Shown: piece by piece, positions 479 to 49,345 of the stretch | How positions within the stretch are numbered: position 1 is the stretch's first letter | How the letters are laid out: each line of letters opens with the position of its first letter | Assembly (NCBI GenBank): GCA_001179505.1 | Contig: CDMY01000380.1 | Coordinates: forward strand, 1 to 64,000 | DNA length: 64,000 nt | DNA from: Vitrella brassicaformis CCMP3155 | Taxonomy: Eukaryota; Protista; Chromerida | Reading direction: 5' to 3' | Program-made: the position numbers and the translations under genes | Notes under the pieces: generated by a model | The model's database searches: none | What the model was told of the DNA's origin: nothing | Seen by the model: the letters and a program-made list of their open reading frames with translations, nothing else

Positions 479-2038
479 ATGGAGGAGGTCAACTCAAGCG
501 ACGTGGTCGGTGATCTGGTCATTGATGGCGAGACGGAGTATGATGACTTGCTCGTCGCCGCGAGAATCGCACAGGTAAGGAAGGAAGTTTGTGGGGAAAT
601 GCTTGTGTATCTGCGGATGGTCTTGAGTGCAGTCAGAGTCTCATCGTCTGCAGCAGACCGCAGCGCAGGGCACCTTGCAGAAACTGGCACACCTGCTCAG
701 GTTCGCGTGACAACATATGGCAGCGTGTACCCCCGCTTGGTCGTTTTGTCCTTCCAGTGATGTTCGCTGCGTCGACGATGACCGGGTTGAGGCGGCTCTT
801 TGTCGGCTCGACCAGTGCCCGATTGATGCTGATGATGACAGTCGCCTGAATCAACAAGACGCTACAGCTGTACCCCCTCCTCCCAAGCAGTCGAGTCTTC
901 CCGCTGATATGGATACTTGCGAATCGATCCACACTTTACGGTTGGGAAGGAGCTTGACGGTGGCGCTGCCGGAAACACGCAGGAGGGACAATGGTGGCGA
1001 CGGTGCGAGGAGCGTTGCGGCGTGGAAACGGCTGCGGGATGTTGTGCACGAGTTTGACTGGACGGTGAGGAAAAGTACTCCGTGCTTCTTCGCTCAGTCA
1101 TTTTGATCCTGCTTACTCGGTTGAAGGAGAATGAAGACGATAACAATGATCAAGATCAGCACCCTGCCCGTCGTGCTTCCAGCCATCTGCCGTTGCCTAG
1201 TGATCGATGTCGGATGCAGGAGGACTATGACATGGACATCACCAAAAAGCTGCAGCACATGGAGTCAACGATGGATGACTCGACACCATCAAGACATTGG
1301 CGCGGCAAACATCGATACGAGCCGGCGATTCGAACCAGCGAGCTCAGCTACCATCTCAGGCTGCAGACGGTCAAGTTTCCAATGCCTGTGACTGCACTGC
1401 CTCCCCCTCCGGCCGCCCAGAGCGATGTGGATAGATTGACTGGTGACTTGGCCGTGGCCAGTGCGTATGCCGGTATGCCACAGTCGTGCTACCGTGTTGT
1501 AATCATCGGCGAGATCCATGCTGTTGTCGACAACATGGTCATCGTTCGGGCCAACAAGGTGAGGGAGTACAATACACAAGTCATACGACACGAAATATCG
1601 TTATTGTTTGTGCTTAAAGGAGAGCCGTGCTTTGGATCTGGGGTCCTTCCTGTGTCTGGAAGATCAAACCATTCTCGGACCCGTACGCAGCAAATAGACG
1701 CACACTTGAGGCCGGATGTGGACTCTTAGTGCGTTGTGTGAGCAGGTGTCTGACGCGTTCGGTCCTGTGAATGCCCCATTTTATGTCATATTCGTGGAGG
1801 CACTCAACGAAAGAAGCACGAGAAAAAGACCAGCCGAGTCTTGGCCGACCGATGATGTCGAGGTCGCCCTTGCCAAGCTGCGAAAGGTACAACGTTTGTC
1901 GCGTGGCCGTCATATATGCAAATAAATTTGATCATGTCCCTCCTTTCATTCCAGGGTGCCGGTGTCGGGTGCCTGGAAGCTTATAGCTCGTACCTCCCTT
2001 CCTCGGGACCAGTTGACTCAAGCACAAGTGGTCAATAA
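479..2038 (+). CDS. Multi-exon hypothetical protein, possible OB-fold-like segment
   Basis: About seven phase-consistent exons were traced: MEEVNSSDV..., SESHRLQ..., DVRCVDD..., ...YRVVIIGEIHAVVDNMVIVRANK, ESRALDLG..., VSDAFGP..., GAGVGCLE...GQ*. Two joins rely on AAG acceptors. The family was not recognised. Confidence 0.55.
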
Positions 2039-2760
2039 TGTGAATGCACAGACCCGTATATCAGCAGCGATAATGTAGTGTTTCTGTACACCCTATCGAC
2101 CCAATCTATCAACATGATGGGCAATCTCCCTCCTTCTCCCCCTCCCCCTCCCCCTCCTCTTCTTGCTCCCTTGCCGACAACGTGTGCACCATGGCCCGCC
2201 GATGAGCGATGGCCTCCTGCTTGGCCTTCTCGTCGCTGTCGGGGTGCCTCGCCCTCATCGATAGGAAACGACCTGCTCTTTCGCTGGCCGTTCTCCTGCC
2301 ATTGGGCCAGCCATCTGTTCTTGGTCTTGTCATAGTTGACGCCCGCGACGCCGCTCTGTCGCTCAGCCCCTCTGCACAGTCGCCCTCCCGCTACGCTCCA
2401 TCTCGGCACGGTGCCGCCCAGCCATCGCCTGACATGCACACACATACATACAGATGCATTCATGAGGCTGACAAGAGGGAGCATTCGATTATGTGGTTAC
2501 CTTGGCCTCGTCGAAGCCGTGCTACGCAGAAGTACTTGCGCTGCGGCTTGTGGTCCTCCTGCCATGTAGCCACCCAGGACTCCGACTCCTGGTGCCACCG
2601 AACACCGGTCACATCAGACTGGTGCTCTGCAGTACAATCACAGACAAACACAGGTTACCCGTTTCCGTCCATCTCTGTTGCTCACCTGCGTCCCCAACAA
2701 TGGTCTTCCTTCTCTTGTCGGTGGTCTCGCGGCGGCGGCCAGCGTTGCGGGCTCCCTTGC
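2028..2760 (-). mobile_element. Double-AP2 element copy 1 (frameshifted) with conserved 3' tail
   Basis: HQSDVTGVRWHQESESWVATWQEDHKPQRKYF and QSGVAGVNYDKTKNRWLAQWQENGQRKSRSF are AP2-like. Both domains are frameshifted relative to paralogs. The shared introns and tail are present. Confidence 0.75.
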
Positions 2761-3186
2761 GGCCGAAGAATTATCGTGACAGTCAGAGAAGAAGCGCAGA
2801 TGATTTGTGTTTTTGTCGTTCTTGTCGACCCCATTGATGGTACAATCATTCAATCTGCCGAGATCCCTGCTTAGATCCCCCTGGGTTGGAAGCGGGGTGA
2901 TTACGGAGATAAATGGATCGCTGGAGAAATTTCCCGAGAACCCGCCACTCACAGGCACGCAATTGCAGGCACGTAGAGACATGCCCGAAGATTCTTATAT
3001 GTAAAGTGATGTCTATTTATCCCCCTTCCTAATTCCGATTCTCACTTGCGCCAGTACAAAAGATTCCCAATCGGTGGCTCAGTGAGAGAATACATGGACT
3101 CTCATCCTTCGGAAGTTACCCGACAGACCCACAGACGCGTCAGTGTCCATCGGAAAACGGATCGTAAATAATATGAACTGTCCGCC

Positions 3187-5152: not shown

Positions 5153-5874
5153 GCAAATGAGAGGGACAGAAAGGCGGCACCTGTTCTCATGTGTGTGGGT
5201 TTGCTGCAGCACACCAGTCTGATGTGCCGGGTGTTTCCTGGCACGAGAATACCCAGGCCTGGGTGGCTTCATGGCACGAGGGCGGCAAGCCGAAGTTCGA
5301 GAACTTCTACGTTAGTGAGCACGGCTTCCACAAGGCCAAGGTAACCACTTAATCGGCTGAACTTCATGCTGTTATGTCAGCGTCATGTTGCACCTGTATG
5401 TATGTGTGTGTATGTCAGGTGTTGGCTGAGGAGCACCGTCTCGAGATGGAGCGTAGCGGGCGGGCGTCTGTGCGGAAGCCGGCTGAGCACCAGAGCGGCG
5501 TCAGGGGCGTCAACTACATGCAGAGAAACCATGCATGGCGGGCCGAATGGCAGGAGGCCGGCGAGAAGAAGGGCAAGACCTTCTCCGTCAAGGAGCTTGG
5601 CTTCGAGAAGGCCAAGCAGATGGCCATCGCACACCGGCGGGCCATGGAGTCAAGGCACTACACGTTTGTCGGCAAGGGTAGCAGCAGAGCAGCCCGCCGT
5701 AGATGATAGTGAGCGTCCCAAGAGGAAGGGGGGAGGGGGAGAGTGAGTGAGTGTTCATAGTAGCCCATCATGTTGATAGATTGGCAGTAGCCCATCATGT
5801 TGATAGATTGGCTTGATAGGTTGTACAGAGACACTACATTATCGCTGTTGATATACTGGTCTGTGCATTCACAT
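5153..5874 (+). mobile_element. Double-AP2 element copy 2 (5'-truncated in intron 1) with 3' tail
   Basis: HQSDVPGVSWHENTQAWVASWHEGGKPKFENFYVSEHGFHKAK, then an intron, then VLAEEHRLEMERSG...HQSGVRGVNYMQRNHAWRAEWQEAGEKKGKTFSVKELGFEKAKQMAIAHRRAME. The tail runs to GCATTCACAT. Confidence 0.85.
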
Positions 5875-6545
5875 GAGCGCATTGTACGACAGTGCACACA
5901 CTGACTACTGCACACACTGGATGCGTTTCTCAAGAATGCCGGTAGTCAGGAGACCACAAGTGCGGTGGGGCGTTTCCAAGGTGTTGCGTCACGGAAGAAT
6001 CCGATATCTACGAAATCCGTCTAAAGGAATGTCTCAAAGTCTGAAGGTTTCGAAGCAGTGTCTCTTCCTTCTACGCAAAAAAGAAAGGGTCCTTTTTCCG
6101 CAAGTCCGAATGAATGCCTTGTGTGTTCATGAGGACGCTCGAATGAATGAATGAATGAATGAATGAATGGGTTTTCCATGCGAGTTCTCGTTCGCCTACG
6201 GCAAAGTAAGACACACATCCACACGGAGAGAGAAAGTGAGAGAAGATCGTGGATTTCGCAACACCATTGTCCGGCCGTTTGAATTTGCTATGGTGTCTCA
6301 GACCGCGCCCAAGATCGCCAAGCAAGATGGCGCCCCCGATGGCTAAAAGAGGAAGGCCGACGAAGCGATCGGTGTCTGTGAGGTATTCCTGTGGTCAAAT
6401 TAGAAAGGCTAATCATCTATGTCTTGTTGTGTCTGTCGGGTGAGGCTGTGCGTGCTGCTGCCACTGGACAAAACGCAGAAGCAGCCCATGAAAGCAGCCC
6501 AGAACGCCTACTACTACAGACACAAACAGTAGCGAACGAGATGGG

Positions 6546-8893: not shown

Positions 8894-11800
8894 ATGGCAT
8901 CAGATCTTTCGGAACTGTATGATGCGTTCGGGAATTACATTGGGCCTCCCGTTGACGAGAACGAGGACGATGACGAGGAAGATATCATTCTCTCGCCGCA
9001 GGCGCATATGGAGGATGAGGATGGGATGGATGCAGAGGGAGGTGCTGGAGCGAGGGATGGGGATACGCTGGAGATGCAGATGGAGGACGTCGAGGGGGAT
9101 CGGTCGGTGGTGCTCTTCGAAGACAAGAAGTTCTACCCCGACGCAGACGAGGTGTACGGCGGAGCGGAGACCCTTGTGCAGGAGGAAGACACCCAGCCAC
9201 TCACTGAGCCCATCATTGCCCCCGTCCGCACCAAGAACTTCGACCTACTAGAGAAGGATCTTCCGTCGACCACGTTCTCGTTTGACTTCCTGAGCGGCCT
9301 CATGTACAAGCGCGAGCTGATTCGGAACATTTGCCTGCTGGGCCATCTGCACCACGGCAAGACACACTTCATGGACATGCTTGTGCAAGAAACCCACGAG
9401 AAGGACTGGAGGTTGGGCAAGTCGTACCGCTACACCGACACGAGGGTGGACGAGCAGGAGAGGGGACTGTCCATCAAGGCCGTCCCGATGTCACTCATAC
9501 TCCAGACCTCACAGGAAAAGTCCTACCTCGTCAACATTCTCGACACGCCTGGTGCGCACAACGAGGGGGACCATACTCACACACGACCGGATAGACGGGC
9601 CTCCTTTCCCTTGCTGGGATATACTTTTGTTTAGGCCATGTTTGTTTCGCCGACGAGGCCGCGGCGGCCATGCGTATCAGCGACGGGGCTGTGATTCTGA
9701 TCGATGCGCTTGAGGGCGTGATGGCAAATACGGAGCGGCTGCTGAAGTTTGCGGTCCAGGAGAACCTCACCATCCTGGTTGTCATCAACTGTATCGATAG
9801 GCTCATCATGGAACTCAGACTGCCGCCCAACGATGCGTACCACAAACTCAGACACACCATCGAAGAGGTCAGCCAGGAAACAATACTCCATAGTACTTCA
9901 TCCATTGTGATCCTTTGAGTGTCGGGTGTGCAGGTCAATAGCATTCTCGAGTCTACATGTTCGATGTTGGGTCATCCCGCCATCCGTGTGTCGCCCATCA
10001 AGGGCACCGTAGCCTTTGCGTCGGGCTACTACCAGTTCGCTTTCACTGTCCACTCATTCGCGCAGATGTACGCCGAGTCATGCGATGAGACGCTCGACCA
10101 TGACTTCTTCGCGAGGTGAGCTCACCGGGGGAGAAAAGAAAGGGTGCGGTGACATGTGGGAATGCCATGCGTACCCATCTACCTAGATGTCTGTGGGGCG
10201 ATGTATATTTCGATCCTGAGTCGCGTACCTTCCGTCGCAGTCCCCCGCCCAGCCGGCCCGGGCAGCCCCGCACCTTCGTGCAGTTCATCCTGGAGCCCCT
10301 CTACAAGATCTTCGCGCACACATCATCCGAAGAACAGCCTGAGCTGGAACCGCTGCTCAGAGAGGTGACAGAGGGAGAGGCACAGGGAATGAGGGGCTCA
10401 CTGGATTGACTTGGTTGTGTGTGATCTAACCTCTCCAGTTGGGTGTGTTCCTTCGCAAGGATGACTTCATTCTTGATACGCGGTCCCTCGTCAAGAAGGT
10501 CTCCCGATCATTCTTCGGGACATCGAGGTGAGGGCAGCAGAGACGCACAAATTGCATCCACGCGGACCGACCTGGATGCATCGTGTGTGACGATAGTGCG
10601 TTTGTGGATATGGTCGTGGCTCACGTGCCCAACCCCCGGGAGAATGCCAGACGGAAGGTCGAGCACATATACACGGGAGACCAAAAAGGACTTATCGCCG
10701 CTGAAATGAAGGCAGGAGAACGCGAGACGCCATCTGAAACACGGTGTTATACATGCACGCATCTGTCCCATTGCAGGATTGCGCGACTGATGGTCATTTG
10801 ATGATTCACACGACCAAGAACTACCACCGGCCTGACTGCGGCCAGTTTGACGTGCTGGGGCGGGTCATGTCCGGCACAATCTACAAGGGACAACGAGTCA
10901 AGGTACGGACGAAGCCGCGCGGTTACGCAAAGCGAACACACACTCATCAAGAGGAAGCCGTCCGATATTGCACTGCATCACCCAATGCAGGTGTTGGGTG
11001 AGGCGTTCAGTTTGGACGACGATGAGGACAAGACTGAGCGGGAGGTCACAGCTCTCTGGATATACGAAGGGAGATACAGAGTAGAGGTAACAAGACGTTC
11101 CGGTTGGCGCCATGTGTCTGACTGGAGCAATCCCTTTCCGTCTCTGGGGTTGTGTCAGGTGAGCCACGTGCCTGCGGGCAACTGGGTTCTGATCGGCGGT
11201 GTCGACCCATCCATCACCAAGACATCGACCATAACCAACATCGACAACGACCAAGAAACAGAAATATTCGCGCCCCTCAAGTTCAACACCAGCAGGTATC
11301 GTATCACCCAGGACATTCGTTGCGTGGAAGGCATCTGTGGTGCTGTCGCCCTTTGCCGTCCGTCTGTTGGCCAGTGTTATCAAGGTGGCGTGTGAGCCAC
11401 TGAATCCCTCCGACTTGCCCAAGATGCTCGAGGGGCTGCGGAAGATCGACAAGTCATACCCACTGGCCAAAACCAAGGTGACTCGCACTCCGGCAACACA
11501 CACAACCCAAGTAATGCGCCATTCAGGTAGAGGAGTCGGGCGAGCATGTGATCGTTGGCACGGGCGAGATAGCAATGGACTGCATGCTGCACGACCTCAG
11601 GAAACTATACGGAGACCTGGAAATAAAGGTACACCTGAAAGAAGACGGTGTATCATTTGGCGAACCTGCTTATGTCTTCCAGGTTGCCGATCCGGTTGTA
11701 ACGTTCTGCGAAACAGTCACGGAGCATTCGACAATGAAGTGCTTTGCGGAGACACCAAACAAGAAGAACAAGGTCTACATGGCAGCTGAACAGCTAGACC

Positions 11801-13321
11801 CAGGTACATCCAGAGCTATCAAGGCAATTAAACACGCATGCATCCTCTCTCTCTGCACTGTCTCTGTGTATGCCCTAGGTGTGGCTGATGATTTGGAGAA
11901 GGGTCTCATTAGCAGCAAATGGGAACACAGGTTAGCCTACAAAACCGCAAGCTGGCAAGCAGACATACATGGACGTGTTGTGCTTACACTGGTGTCAGCC
12001 AACTCGGCGATTTCTTTATGCACAAGTATTCATGGGACGTGTTGTCCGCCCGCTCCATTTGGGCATTTGGACCCGACGCACAGGGACCAAACATGCTGCT
12101 CGACGAAACTCTGCCCACAGATGTGCAGCAGCAACTAGGAACAGCAGACCTTGGGGCTCCGCAACCTGTCTGCTGTTTGCAGGTTGACAAGGCTCTGTTG
12201 GGTACAGTGAGAGATTTGATCGTCCAGGGCTTTCAGTGGGCAACACGAGAGGGGCCGCTCATTGAAGAGAATATACGGTGCACAAAACCAAGAAAGGAGA
12301 AGGCAGGGAAAGTCAGCGGACGTAGCTGTGTGTTCTGTCTATTCAGCAACGTGAAGTTTAAGTTAAACGATGCGCTGATTGCCAGCGACCCCATCAGCAG
12401 GGGAGGGGGACAAATCATACCCACAGCAAGGTACAGGCAGCAGAGACCAAATCTGCATGGCTCATCCATCCGTGCACATACGTGTGTGTGTGTGTGTGTG
12501 TGTGCAGGCGTGTGGCCTATTCGGCTTTTCTGCTGGCTACTCCCCGCCTGATGGAGCCCGTCCTATACAGCGAGATTCAGTGTCCCGCAGACTGCGTGTC
12601 AGCTGTGTACACAGTCCTAGCCAGGTCAACCGATTTGAGGCAGCATACACGTAGGGGACATTTGAGTCTGGACTATTCTCGTTCAGGCGTCGCGGTCGTG
12701 TGGTTCGTGACCTTCCCAAGCCAGGGACGCCCCTGTACATCTGTCAGGCGGTGCTACCGGCCATCGAATCATTCGGATTCGAAACAGACCTCAGGTGAAA
12801 CATACAAGCACCGGGGAGATCGGCACGTGGTGACCGCTCTGTTTGTCTGTTGTGTATCAGGACCCACACATCTGGCCAGGCATTTTGCATGTCGATGTTC
12901 GACAGGTGGGAAGTCGTCCCTGGCGACCCACTCGACAAGGTGACACCTGCCTGCTAAACCCGAACCATCCTGTGTAAGGCGGGCACGCCCTTGTGTGTGT
13001 GCGTGAGCAATTCAGTCGATCGTCTTGCGTCCGTTGGAGCCTGCGCCGCACCAGCACCTCGCCAGAGAATTCCTGCTGAAGACAAGGAGAAGAAAGGTGA
13101 CCTGACCAACCGCCCATGTGTGCGTTGCTCGTGTTGGCACCTAGATGGTGTTCCTCAGGGTTTGAGTGAAGACGTGGCTTTGCAGAAGTACTTCGACGAG
13201 CCGATGCTCAAGGAGCTCAGAGGGCGAGAGGAAGGTACAAACCACGCATTGTGCGCGTATGTATGTGCCTCACGTGTTTCCGTGTGTGTCAGATTTCCAG
13301 GACTTCCAGGCCTACTTTTAA
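8894..13321 (+). CDS. EFTUD2: U5 snRNP 116-kDa GTPase (Snu114), multi-exon
   Basis: Acidic N-terminus with [12 protein letters not shown]1 [13 protein letters not shown], then [38 protein letters not shown] and [19 protein letters not shown]. Ends DFQAYF*. Confidence 0.97.
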
Positions 13322-13626
13322 ACCTGGCGGCCAAAGTTCTGTTTTCGATGCACATCATATTCTCCAACAAACCTCTCCAGTCACACTATATAGCGTCAGG
13401 CATCAGACATCTTGCATTGCATTAAGCTGACTTAGTCGACGATTCCGGCGAGATGAATGTTGAGTAGTTTGATGAATGGCTGATCAGCTGGAACTTTCAA
13501 ATTCACTCAATACCACAATAACTCGCCAGTTTCCACAGGAGAGACTGGCGGACATCGCAATGTACTCATGAAGCAAAACCCTCACTGAGGCCACAGCCAA
13601 CCTTGTACGCAGTGCATATATGCCCA

Positions 13627-13920
13627 TGAACGAACGACATCTATACAATATCAACAGGTGGCTACAATCAACGCTCTCCTTCCTCCTCTTCTTCTTCTTC
13701 TCCGAGATGCCCGACTCACATGCCCCCTGCATGTGTGCTGCGCCAGGTCGGTTGACCTGGCGAGGACTGTGTACACGGCTGACACGCAGTCTGCGGGGCG
13801 CTGTAAGGACGACCTCCCCCTCCTCCTCCACGCAGAAGAAGAGGAGGGGGAGGGGGGAGGAGAGTGAGTAAGGATTGTTGATTGTAGCCACCTGTTGATA
13901 TGTTTAGACGGTTTGTTCAC
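13627..13920. mobile_element. Small foldback: inverted AP2-element tails enclosing a captured EFTUD2 fragment
   Basis: A perfect 25-bp inverted repeat lies at 13648-13672 and 13877-13901 (gttgattgtagccacctgttgatat). The interior 13711-13803 is a diverged reverse complement of 12578-12670. Confidence 0.8.
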
Positions 13921-14760
13921 TCGAACCACGCCCGAGTAGTGACAGATCTGTACAACGAAACGGCCGGGAGAGCAACTCAACGACAACGAAGCCCGGGCCC
14001 GCAAGCACGCTCGCGAGGTGCTGTCACGTCATCTAGCTGTGACACGAGTCATGACACACACGAATGACAGCTTCGTCAGGGACTCTCACGCCTGAGCAGC
14101 CGGTCCTATGATGATTGACGTGTAACGATGCCCCGGGGGCCACACACGCGTTGGTCCACGGCTGTGTGTTAACGTTGCCATCTGTTTGTCCGCCGGTGCC
14201 AGTGTAGGGAGCAGTGTTCAACGTGTGCATGCTCTTATGCATGTATATGGTGCTAGTTTAGTGCGTGACATGACAGGACAAATGGAGTGCCTGTAACTGC
14301 ATCCATGCGACGTCATACGCAAACGAATGGTCATTGGGGGGTTGGGCCATTCCAATGGCGAAGCGGAGGAATGTTGCAGGGTGCATGAGATGACACGTCA
14401 ATACACACGACAGCTCAGATCAGTTTCACGGATCTTGCTCTAGCTGAAAGCTGAGCTGGTGGGTGGTTATCAGGTCCCAGTTTACCGGCGCGGAACCAAC
14501 TTTTTTTCCAGGGGGTCTTTTCAAGATCTGCTTTGTGATGGTTGTGGAGGGGGTCACTGCGAGGAACGAGTTTGCTTCGAGCTTCAAATCCGCTCACGCG
14601 TCCGCGCGAAAAACGGCGGCAAAAAACCCGGAAAATCGGTTTTTGGCTGTTTTCTCTCGGGTTTATGGTGCGTTCGCCGCGCAAGTCTGAGTGTGAGTGC
14701 TCCTTCGTCTGCTCTGTCCTCACGCAAGCGGTCACGCGCTCTGCCTTCCGTGAAACACGA

Positions 14761-15600
14761 GAACCAGCCACCGAAAGTTGACGCTGCCATCAACCCAAAT
14801 CACCACAATTGTGTCAATGCATGATACGTTTCGCTATGCTGTGTTCACACGCAAGCGCTACTGGCTTTTCGTTCCGTCAGAAAGAAGAACCAGTCACTGA
14901 AAGGTTACACAGCCATGAACCATCAGTCACACAATGCGTCGCTCAGGGCACAACTGCTTTACGTTCTCTTTCGTACGCAAGTGGCCGTCGCTCTTCGACC
15001 CGCAAACGAGACCATAGCCGCTGAAAACTTGCTCACCGCTAACTCAACCGCAGTGTCCCTGCACACGCTTCAAGGTCGATCTGGTTGATGAAATATATGT
15101 ACACGGACGCTGCGAGAGACGAGTTTGGTTCTAATTGCAATTGCGCCCTGGCGTTCGGGTAAAACGTGGCGAACACTGGTGTCTGTTGCACGGAAATCGG
15201 CATTTTGTGCTGATTTCTCTCGGGACTCTCATTTATTCGACGCAAAAGCATGTATGTCTGATACATTTCGCCACGCTGTGTTTGGACGCAAGCGGCCGTT
15301 GCCCTGCGCCGTCTTGAGAAAGAGAACCAGCCACCGAAAGTTCACACAGCCGCCAACCTAAATCAGCACGATTGTGTCAATGCATGATACATCTCGCTAT
15401 GCTGTATTCACACGCAAACGACCATCGCTCTCCGCCCCGTCAAAAGGAGAACCGTCACCGAAAGTTTACACAGCCGTCGATAATCCCAAACTATCTGGAC
15501 ACACCTCTCCCACTTCGGTCCTCACGCATGTGGCCGTCGCTCTCTTCGCCTCAAAAGGACAACCAACCAATAAAGGTTTACACACCCCAACCACCAAACG
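14761..15600 (+). repeat. Degenerate tandem/direct repeat array
   Basis: A roughly 100-bp block at 14761-14860 recurs at about 15323-15420. The core gaaccagccaccgaaag(g/t)t and its variants occur at about 14763, 14887, 15325, 15450 and 15560. Confidence 0.7.
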
Positions 15601-25737: not shown

Positions 25738-27323
25738 GAATTGAGCTAGTGCCTGGCTAGTGCTCATTTGCTCGAATTGGGCTAGAGCCCATTTGCGTCT
25801 TTCAGAAACAACACGTTCGGCAGAAAAAACGTTCGATCACGATCGTATGGACGGCAAAGGAAAATCGGTAGCGGTGTTGTCTTGCTTGCACTACTAGAGA
25901 CACGTCGAGAAGCTTCGTTTTTTCGTTAAACTGATGTGCCCTAAAGCGGCAAGGTGTTGCTTGAAAAAGCTCGCGCGTGCGCCACTGAAGGAGAAATCCC
26001 CAAGGCACGAACTTCCTAAAAGATGCATCTACTGACTGAACACACGAAACGCGCCAGTTTGTGGTGGATGGGATGTTTCTCCTTTGTCCGTTCATGCAGC
26101 TGGTTGAGCTTTGTCTTTCTTGGTTGCCTTTTCGCAGGTCCCTCAGTGCCGCATCGACTTTGTCGAGCTTCTGGCGGTTAACGAAAGAGATCTCGCCGAC
26201 TATCGTGTAGTGGATATGCTTGTAAGGCTCCTCTCTGCAAATGCGGTCACCATCGACTGCCTGCTGCTTCCCCGTTTGGCGCCGCAGCCTCTTCTCGCCA
26301 CTCTCGAAGCCATCGAAGAGGTGCAGGAGCGAATCGACTGTCGAGCCTTCGGTGTTATCTGCAGCCACACCGGTAGGTAAGTGCCGCCAGACACAGCCAA
26401 TGTCTGCATTGCAGTTCAGCAGAACAAGCCTTCACGGCTTTCATGACGGTCTTACCGGTCAGGCACATGCGCAATGGCGCGATGTATTTATTGTCCCTCA
26501 GGTCTTTGTAGTGGTTCAGCAAGTGGCTGCAGATGATTTGGAACGCCCGCATCTGCTCTTCGTTCAATCGGTAACGGCTCGCCCAGTGAACAGAGAACGT
26601 CCTGTCGTCGACCGTCTCAGGCGGCTGCAATGCGGACGCCGGCTGCTCCAGCAGTCGAGTGAGGTCGGCAGCATCCATCGAGTGACCACAGTGTGTCTGG
26701 CGGCACTTCAGGAGGCTTGCTTCATCTGACGTGGCGCGGCTGTGGCCGATTTCATTTACCTTGTTGCGTTGCTGGTGCAGGTCATCGTTAGGCTGATCCT
26801 GGCGGCTCCCATTTGATTGACAAGCCGATTGACAGTCATCGAAGGCAGTCTTCGATAGCCCCTTCAACAGGCGCGCTAGATTGATACATGTCTATTGATA
26901 TCATCGCTGCATATCGATAGGCTGGCATCCAATTGCATCCAGCGGTGCATTGATATACTTGGCGAAGCACGTCTTCAACACGGGCGCAGCAGAAGCGGCA
27001 ACATGGGGGGTGTCTTGTGTTCTTGGTGCAGCCCTCTGAGTACCTGTATGTTATCGACACGTCTGTCTTCGAGATCTGCATGCTTTTCAAGCCCTCGATT
27101 GTTGTCTGCATGTTTTTGAAACTCTCGCCATTGTTGCATGCGTCGGTGTGCTTCTCGCAAACACTCGTGCTGTGCACGTCTCTGTGACGCAGAATTGAAC
27201 CACCACTTCGCACGCTGCTTTCCACCCCTGCCCAATTCGCGGCCCGGGGTGCCCTACCCCTTACTCGGAATTCCGTGAATTGGGCTAGAGCCCTTTTGCG
27301 TCTTTATGAAACAACACGTTCGG
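25738..27323 (-). mobile_element. Decayed Helitron-type PIF1 helicase fragment between 47-bp direct repeats
   Basis: PLRMCLTG-KT (Walker A with a deletion), TGVAADNTEGSTVDSLL (motif Ia, frameshifted) and IVGEISFVNRQKLDKVDAALRDLRK (motif II with DE changed to GE). The repeats at 25774-25820 and 27277-27323 match at 44 of 47 positions. Confidence 0.75.
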
Positions 27324-48403: not shown

Positions 48404-48869
48404 ACAAGACACGCTTAACGGACCTCCGTTGCTGGCAATATACACCCCATTGCCGTCGGTGACCTCCATTGCTGGCAACGGACCTTNNNNNNNNNNNNNN
48501 NNNNNNNNNNNNNNNNNNNNNNNNNNNNNNNNNNNNNNNNNNNNNNNNNNNNNNNNNNNNNNNNNNNNNNNNNNNNNNNNNNNNNNNNNNNNNNNNNNNN
48601 NNNNNNNNNNNNNNNNNNNNNNNNNNNNNNNNNNNNNNNNNNNNNNNNNNNNNNNNNNNNNNNNNNNNNNNNNNNNNNNNNNNNNNNNNNNNNNNNNNNN
48701 NNNNNNNNNNNNNNNNNNNNNNNNNNNNNNNNNNNNNNNNNNNNNNNNNNNNNNNNNNNNNNNNNNNNNNNNNNNNNNNNNNNNNNAAGGTCCGTTGCCA
48801 GCAATGGAGGTCACCGACGGCAATGGGGTGTATATTGCCAGCAACGGAGGTCCGTTAAGCGTGTCTTGT
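48404..48869. mobile_element. Exact 83-bp inverted repeats flanking a gap, interrupting an AP2-element tail
   Basis: 48404-48486 is the exact reverse complement of 48787-48869. The tail consensus gtacaacc|tatcaagcc is split at this point. Confidence 0.55.
48487..48786. other. Assembly gap (300 N)
   Basis: Run of N. Confidence 1.
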
Positions 48870-48871
48870 AT

Positions 48872-49345
48872 CAAGCCAATCTATCAACATCATGGGCTAC
48901 AGCCAACAACCCTCACTCACTCCCTCTTCCTCTTCTTCTTCTTCCTCCCAGCACTCAAAATCGCCAGACACAGCGCTTGGTTTGATCACTCCAGCGTACA
49001 CGCTGATGTCACCCTGTTTGCCGCCGCCCTCCACCTTCTCAGCCGAGCTACAATAGACAACCCTCCCTCACTCTCCCCCATATCTGTACAATCTGTCAAG
49101 CCAATCTATCAACATCATGGGCTACAGCCAACAACCCTCACTCACTCCCTCTTCCTCTTCTTCTTCTTCCTCCCAGCACTCAAATTCGCCAGACACAGCG
49201 CTTGGTTTGATCACTCCAGCGTACACGCTGATGTCACCCTGTTTGCCGCCGCCCTCCACCTTCTCAGCCGAGCTACAATAGACAACCCTCCCTCACTCTC
49301 CCCCATATCTGTACAATCTGTCAAGCCAATGTATCAACATGATGA
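48872..49345 (-). repeat. 225-bp tandem repeat (2 full units plus the start of a third)
   Basis: Units start with caagccaat at 48872, 49097 and 49322. Each unit is an AP2 tail plus an unrelated core. Confidence 0.9.

Follow-up and report, generated by a model that had tools for sequence, protein, structure and literature searches.

Templated insertions, as made in MMBIR, polymerase-theta end joining and SD-MMEJ, place a short inverted copy of nearby sequence at a junction, may add a second short snap-back copy, and are met at loci prone to secondary structure (PMC8421209, PMC7165422, PMC5728401). Pack-MULEs and other DNA transposons that carry gene fragments hold intron-containing pieces of host genes between inverted ends (PMC5861414, PMC1947982), and in plants the inverted duplication of a target sequence is a known route to miRNA genes (PMC3237417). 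On a smaller scale, a short template switch converts a quasi-palindrome to a perfect stem in a single step (PMC5453318, PMC8794818).

The locus described here lies in a window of 64,000 nucleotides, the whole stretch of DNA that was analysed, at the start of contig CDMY01000380.1 of Vitrella brassicaformis CCMP3155. Vitrella is a chromerid, and chromerids are the free-living sister group of apicomplexan parasites. Genome searches covered the whole assembly of this strain (72,700,666 bases, 1064 contigs). That assembly was built from Illumina shotgun reads, and Vitrella is reported to have one cluster of 50 homologous apiAP2 genes (PMC4501334), the family to which the AP2 sequences at this locus belong. 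The unit at 13627-13920 consists of two AP2-gene 3′ tails, set as inverted arms around a backwards copy of a piece of the neighboring Snu114 gene. A sequence-only reading of the window had singled out this place, and all the items it described are present in the sequence, with coordinates off by at most 1 nt. The features of the unit and of its parent gene are as follows.

8894 to 13321, plus strand: Snu114/EFTUD2 gene (U5 snRNP GTPase), single copy; PF16004 and GTP_EFTU in the first exon, EFG_C pieces in the last exons
12509 to 12624, plus strand: exon ending in VYTVLA(R); aligns to hSnu114 residues 814-851, E 1e-13
12578 to 12671, plus strand: parent segment of the copy, 47 nt of exon and 47 nt of intron; repeat search, genome BLAST and ungapped alignment
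12625 to 12686, plus strand: 62-nt intron, GT...AG; neighboring exons contiguous in hSnu114
13627 to 13704, minus strand: left arm, AP2-family 3′ tail, inverted; tail model match at 13620-13696 (minus), E 2e-5, with BLAST and alignments
13648 to 13672, no strand: left copy of a perfect 25-bp inverted repeat, partner at 13877-13901; repeat search
13710 to 13803, minus strand: inverted 94-nt copy of a Snu114 exon-intron junction (the cargo); 80/94 identical, genome E 1.3e-22
13741 to 13762, no strand: perfect 9-bp stem with a 4-nt loop, within the copy; folding and alignment to the parent
13813 to 13853, no strand: 16-nt inverted repeat, 94% (13813-13828 and 13838-13853); snap-back copy of the right arm purine tract
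13831 to 13920, plus strand: right arm, AP2-family 3′ tail, direct; tail model match at 13842-13926 (plus), E 1e-11

When the whole unit was compared with the genome by BLAST, the matches were the unit itself, the Snu114 parent, and AP2-tail sequence on contigs C797 and C848.

An inverted copy of a Snu114 exon-intron junction

The exons of the parent gene were searched one by one, and the domain and structure matches are therefore exon-level rather than those of a joined protein: the first exon matches PF16004, the EFTUD2 N-terminus, with 112 bits and GTP_EFTU with 57 bits, the last exons yield consecutive EFG_C pieces, and the best matches among solved structures (PDB) are hSnu114/Cwf10. Since the exon at 12688-12795 aligns to residues 853-888 of human Snu114, directly following the residues covered by the exon upstream of it, the sequence between the two can be assigned as a 62-nt GT-AG intron. 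The last intron of the gene and the stop codon at 13319-13321 are those predicted from the reading frame. The 5′ splice site of the 62-nt intron lies within a quasi-palindrome (12619-12640); in RNA, a stem of 6 bp, two of them G-U, could form there.

The copy and its parent segment align as reverse complements without a gap (80/94 identical, 85%), as the sequence-only reading had proposed for a diverged copy across the exon-intron junction, and the homology ends sharply on both sides. Half of the copied stretch is exon (47 nt) and the other 47 nt come from the 62-nt intron, which excludes spliced mRNA as the template and bears out the same reading on this point; unspliced RNA is formally possible as template, and DNA is the simpler reading. 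Template and copy lie 1038 nt apart (~1.04 kb) on the same contig, in inverted orientation. From the predicted Snu114 stop it is 305 nt to the start of the unit and 388 nt to that of the copy, in keeping with the distance of about 400 bp first reported.

In the 72.7 Mb searched, the only other match of 13710-13803 is the parent segment itself. PF16004 occurs at one locus in the genome, and the remaining protein matches of the exon, the inverted copy excepted, lie on other contigs at about 50% identity. With a single PF16004 locus and a DNA match to the neighbor alone, the adjacent Snu114 gene is the sole credible source. A second EFTUD2 paralog or a common repeat, either of which would have spoken against the first reading had it been closer to the fragment, was considered as the source and rejected on the same grounds: the closest and only relative of the copy in the assembly is the adjacent single-copy gene.

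Parent and copy differ at 14 positions, four in the exon part (4/47, three of them at third codon positions) and ten in the intron part (10/47), a difference in counts that is not significant (p = 0.15). Five of the 14 fall in the 9-bp hairpin, whose arms are 13741-13749 and 13754-13762. This hairpin had been described as present in the copy and absent from the parent, and so it is: the same positions in the parent, where the quasi-palindrome lies, make only four Watson-Crick and two G-T pairs. Four clustered differences (parent positions 12634, 12635, 12638 and 12639) all restore pairing, with the result that the 3′ arm is the exact complement of the 5′ arm, as a single short template switch would leave it. 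Counted as events rather than as sites, the divergence is about 11 in 94. The differences are also strongly directional, with A or T in the parent and G or C in the copy at 12 sites and the opposite at one (p = 0.003); when the hairpin cluster is left aside the ratio is 9 to 1 (p = 0.02), and the GC content is 67% in the copy against 55% in the parent. Biased conversion, error-prone synthesis and decay of the parent are candidate causes. An outgroup that would polarize the differences was sought with a 20-mer common to parent and copy, which had no match in a metagenome scan.

The age implied by 15% divergence would also suit an inverted segmental duplication that once took in more of the Snu114 3′ region and of which nearly all has since been deleted, and a lower count of differences in the exon (4/47) than in the intron (10/47) would be expected under selection on the parent, although the contrast does not reach significance (p = 0.15). 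However, when 13323-14400 was searched with word size 7 against the complete gene, the 94 nt came up and no other Snu114 relic, which argues against a decayed larger duplication, and the fragment is directly bracketed by unrelated AP2 tails. We regard an origin as such a relic as quite unlikely. Still less room is left for an artefact of a short-read scaffold. The assembly does derive from Illumina shotgun reads (PMC4501334) and another inverted repeat in the window brackets a gap of N, but mis-joins yield identical copies and not 85%-identical ones, 12400-14200 is free of N runs, and the arms as well as the copy carry private differences; with such divergence, such private changes and no gap near, a mis-join is very unlikely.

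AP2-family tails as arms, and the rarity of such units

On contig C848 the arms match the last part of an open reading frame and the 3′ UTR behind it. In an alignment of 12 such tails the last codons are purine-rich, the stop region comes next, and a motif in the UTR is conserved. AP2-related loci number at least 43 in the genome; within the window, PF00847 (AP2) is matched twice at 5191-5703, with 38.2 and 48.3 bits and thus above the cut-off of 33.3 bits. The right arm of the unit contains all three parts of the tail. The left arm is without about 12 nt around the stop-codon region by comparison with the right arm. Weak homology of the left arm to a genic tail may extend to ~13585, and homology of the right arm to its counterpart on contig C797 may extend to ~13945. 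The 3′ ends of the two arms face outward, the left one being inverted and the right one direct.

The sequence-only reading had the cargo flanked by AP2 tails in the form of a perfect 25-bp inverted repeat. That repeat is real (13648-13672 and 13877-13901; zero expected in shuffles), but the arms are in fact longer, covering 13627-13704 and 13831-13920, and diverged. The 25-mer occurs at only four sites in the genome at up to three mismatches, one of them genic. Read from the left, the interval between the arms consists of 5 nt, then the 94-nt copy, another 9 nt, a pyrimidine tract of 16 nt at 13813-13828 and a 9-nt loop. The tract corresponds, as its reverse complement, to 13838-13853 of the right arm, a template 9 nt away. 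Identity between the two arms is 65-83%, and neither is closer to its partner than to other tails. Across this unit, the C797 unit and the genic C848 tail, likeness ranges over ~65-89% depending on the stretch, and in comparisons with the right arm of this unit its left arm is outscored by both arms on C797. Pairwise scores favor neither left-left and right-right orthology nor arm-to-arm copying. The four arms of the two units all begin at one and the same edge of the purine tract, which a fragile hot spot and common descent of a discrete unit fit equally.

A sequence model built from the 12 tails and run on the whole genome found about 30 significant tails and only two compact inverted pairs, of which the unit described here is one. 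The second, C797:6181-6287 (minus) and 6317-6434 (plus), has a spacer of ~13 nt without cargo; its arms face outward too, are ~66-75% alike and are longer, reaching model position ~111-117 of 122. BLAST with either compact unit finds only the other, and genome-wide searches for further tail-cargo-tail units by the 25-mer pattern, a degenerate motif, BLAST with both units and the tail model gave none. Head-to-head AP2 pairs with outward tails also exist at the scale of kilobases, on contigs C380 (2042/5788) and C848 (3485/5789). In the head-to-head pair of the window (2038-2800 and 5190-5874), the 3′ tails are 93% alike and the coding parts 70-86%.

These data bear on the proposal that came with the discovery of the unit, namely that the fragment had been captured by a mobile AP2 element. 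A foldback, MITE or Pack-type element with AP2 tails as terminal inverted repeats, which acquired the Snu114 fragment, would account for inverted ends around foreign DNA and for a second unit on C797 that shares the inner truncation point. It would also suit AP2 units that end sharply at one 3′ position and are followed by at least five different downstream sequences, as well as a 25-bp core that is perfect in otherwise diverged arms (P ~0.004-0.15). On the other hand, comparing the sequence outside 13627 with that outside 13919 gives no direct repeat that could be a target-site duplication, and the flanks of the C797 unit have only a weak 5/8 resemblance. By the tail model, AP2 units carry the tail at the 3′ end only, with no inverted tail at the 5′ side, and a compact unit can thus not be the internal-deletion derivative of one AP2 unit; nor did the model find in the genome a longer, autonomous relative with the same sequence at both ends. 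As for multiple copies at unrelated loci, the genome has only two compact pairs, one of them empty. Either arm is as divergent from its partner as from other tails, and the cargo comes from the adjacent gene, so that a capture that never moved would be indistinguishable from repair. A mobile Pack-type or MITE-type element is therefore not supported: we consider it unlikely, with the one-ended tails, the missing target-site duplication, the count of two units and the distance between the arms all speaking against the proposed capture. The search for other tail-cargo-tail units that had been suggested along with it led to the empty pair on C797. A Helitron-type end was considered separately and rejected, the 3′ boundary of AP2 units in the tail alignment not being CTRR by eye.

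Other repeats are found in the window. What appears as a 233-nt perfect palindrome at 48404-48869 is mostly a gap of N (48487-48786) between an 83-nt perfect inverted repeat, which interrupts an AP2 tail and could be either a TIR element or an assembly problem. It is followed at 48871-49320 by two tandem units of 225 nt, 100% identical and with a truncated AP2 tail in each, next to which lies a third, diverged unit. From 14398 to 15600 and beyond, starting ~480 nt past the unit, lies a repeat of high copy number, with at least 50 loci that are 78-90% identical; it is often found on small contigs that also bear AP2 tails. Finally, 1-295 and 26455-26760 form an inverted repeat of ~300 nt, 89-100% identical, with its copies 26 kb apart.

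Templated repair as a proposed origin, and the question of an RNA role

We lean, with moderate confidence, towards reading the unit as a templated, inverted filler insertion that break repair or replicative template switching placed at the center of a small inverted repeat and that has decayed since. The first layer would have been a small inverted repeat of two 3′ tails, both from the expanded apiAP2 family of Vitrella and with their ends outward, left either by the loss of the center from a head-to-head AP2 gene pair or by an old snap-back duplication at the purine tract. In the second, a break or a stalled fork at the center of the repeat would have led to the copying, in reverse, of 94 nt from Snu114 1.04 kb upstream, an insertion of the templated or 'filler' type such as MMBIR or polymerase-theta may produce; the 16-nt stretch that adjoins the copied fragment would be a snap-back copy of the purine tract of the arm. 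The copy would then have diverged, and one short template switch may have produced the perfect 9-bp hairpin at the former 5′ splice site.

Several observations agree with such a history. The three inserted pieces (left arm, cargo and 16-nt tract) are all inverted copies with templates at most 1.3 kb away, and, as in templated insertions, the inserts copy a nearby template backwards (94 nt from a distance of 1038 nt, 16 nt from a distance of 9 nt). An insertion at the center of an inverted repeat is also supported by the existence of an empty counterpart, the C797 unit. Microhomology was not seen at either junction of the copy (13709/13710 and 13803/13804), where 15% divergence could have erased a signal of 1-5 nt. 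Against a repair origin count this lack of visible microhomology, the distance of the template, which at ~1.04 kb is beyond the 100 bp or less usually scored, the fact that there is a single example, and the start edge shared by the four arms, which fits the descent of a discrete unit equally well. The 12:1 bias from A/T to G/C is left unexplained by repair and is likewise counted against it.

A quite different possibility, akin to the read-through dsRNA raised by the sequence-only reading, is that the unit is a functional RNA locus, transcribed for instance by read-through from Snu114, whose product would be a hairpin RNA or would anneal to the Snu114 pre-mRNA over its 5′ splice site. The complementarity that dsRNA would need exists: the unit forms a long hairpin in folding (z = -10.2 as DNA, z = -11.2 as RNA), and parent and copy, if on one plus-strand transcript, would pair at 87 of 94 positions (80 Watson-Crick and 7 G-U; -172.6 kcal/mol). 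Four loci exceed the Pfam cut-off for Piwi (C537:21682-21969, C227:629506-629844, C413:3013-3210 and C425:36331-36528), and the genome thus probably encodes Argonaute-type proteins; the plant route to miRNA genes by inverted duplication of a target sequence (PMC3237417) would provide a precedent. Yet no Rfam family comes near threshold, low-complexity miRNA models giving matches far below it on the purine/pyrimidine hairpin, the excess of G-U pairs on the plus strand (7 vs 3) is not significant, and the arms are decayed. Since the 25-mer has one genic match in the genome at up to three mismatches, targeting of the whole family is unlikely. Taken together, a functional RNA locus seems very unlikely, and we infer that the unit serves no function. 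More improbable again is the specific case in which the unit would lie in or just beyond the Snu114 3′ UTR and be co-transcribed, its antisense copy pairing across the 5′ splice site of intron 12625-12686. If true, a splicing-sensitive feedback, or else a source of small RNA, would be built into a core spliceosome gene, and the perfect 25-bp stem could give a small RNA against one AP2 paralog; the antisense copy would matter far more if it were transcribed together with Snu114.

If the unit is instead a scar of templated repair, it would be a clean and datable case of copy-paste DNA repair in a chromerid, and would suggest that short, intron-bearing pieces of genes can enter nearby inverted repeats without a transposon. 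For genome annotation, such pieces mimic captured exons or Pack-type elements. The case would also bear on the rearrangement of the 50-member apiAP2 family and its neighborhood.

Comparison with known systems

Set beside the systems named at the outset, the unit is nearest to the templated insertions of MMBIR, polymerase-theta end joining and SD-MMEJ (PMC8421209, PMC7165422, PMC5728401). The likeness lies in a short, inverted copy of nearby sequence at a junction, in a second short snap-back copy, and in a locus prone to secondary structure. The differences are that the template is ~1 kb away here and within ~100 bp there, that 94 nt is at the long end of the range with no microhomology visible at the junctions, and that the event is old (15% diverged), which makes the enzymology unreadable. 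Young plant miRNA or hairpin-RNA genes likewise begin as an inverted duplication of the 3′ sequence of a gene that gives a long hairpin (PMC3237417), whereas here the stem is decayed except for 25 bp and the unit is known from sequence. Pack-MULEs and other DNA transposons that carry gene fragments resemble the unit in their inverted ends around part of a host gene, intron sequence included (PMC5861414, PMC1947982). The unit differs from them in that a target-site duplication, a family of copies and an autonomous partner sharing both ends are all missing, and in a cargo taken from the adjacent gene with no sign of movement. Within the copy, the four clustered substitutions that turn an imperfect stem into a perfect 9-bp stem resemble quasi-palindrome correction (PMC5453318, PMC8794818), except that a gain in the copy and a loss in the parent cannot be told apart without an outgroup. 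Most likely, then, the organism and the setting are new and the kind of event is known.
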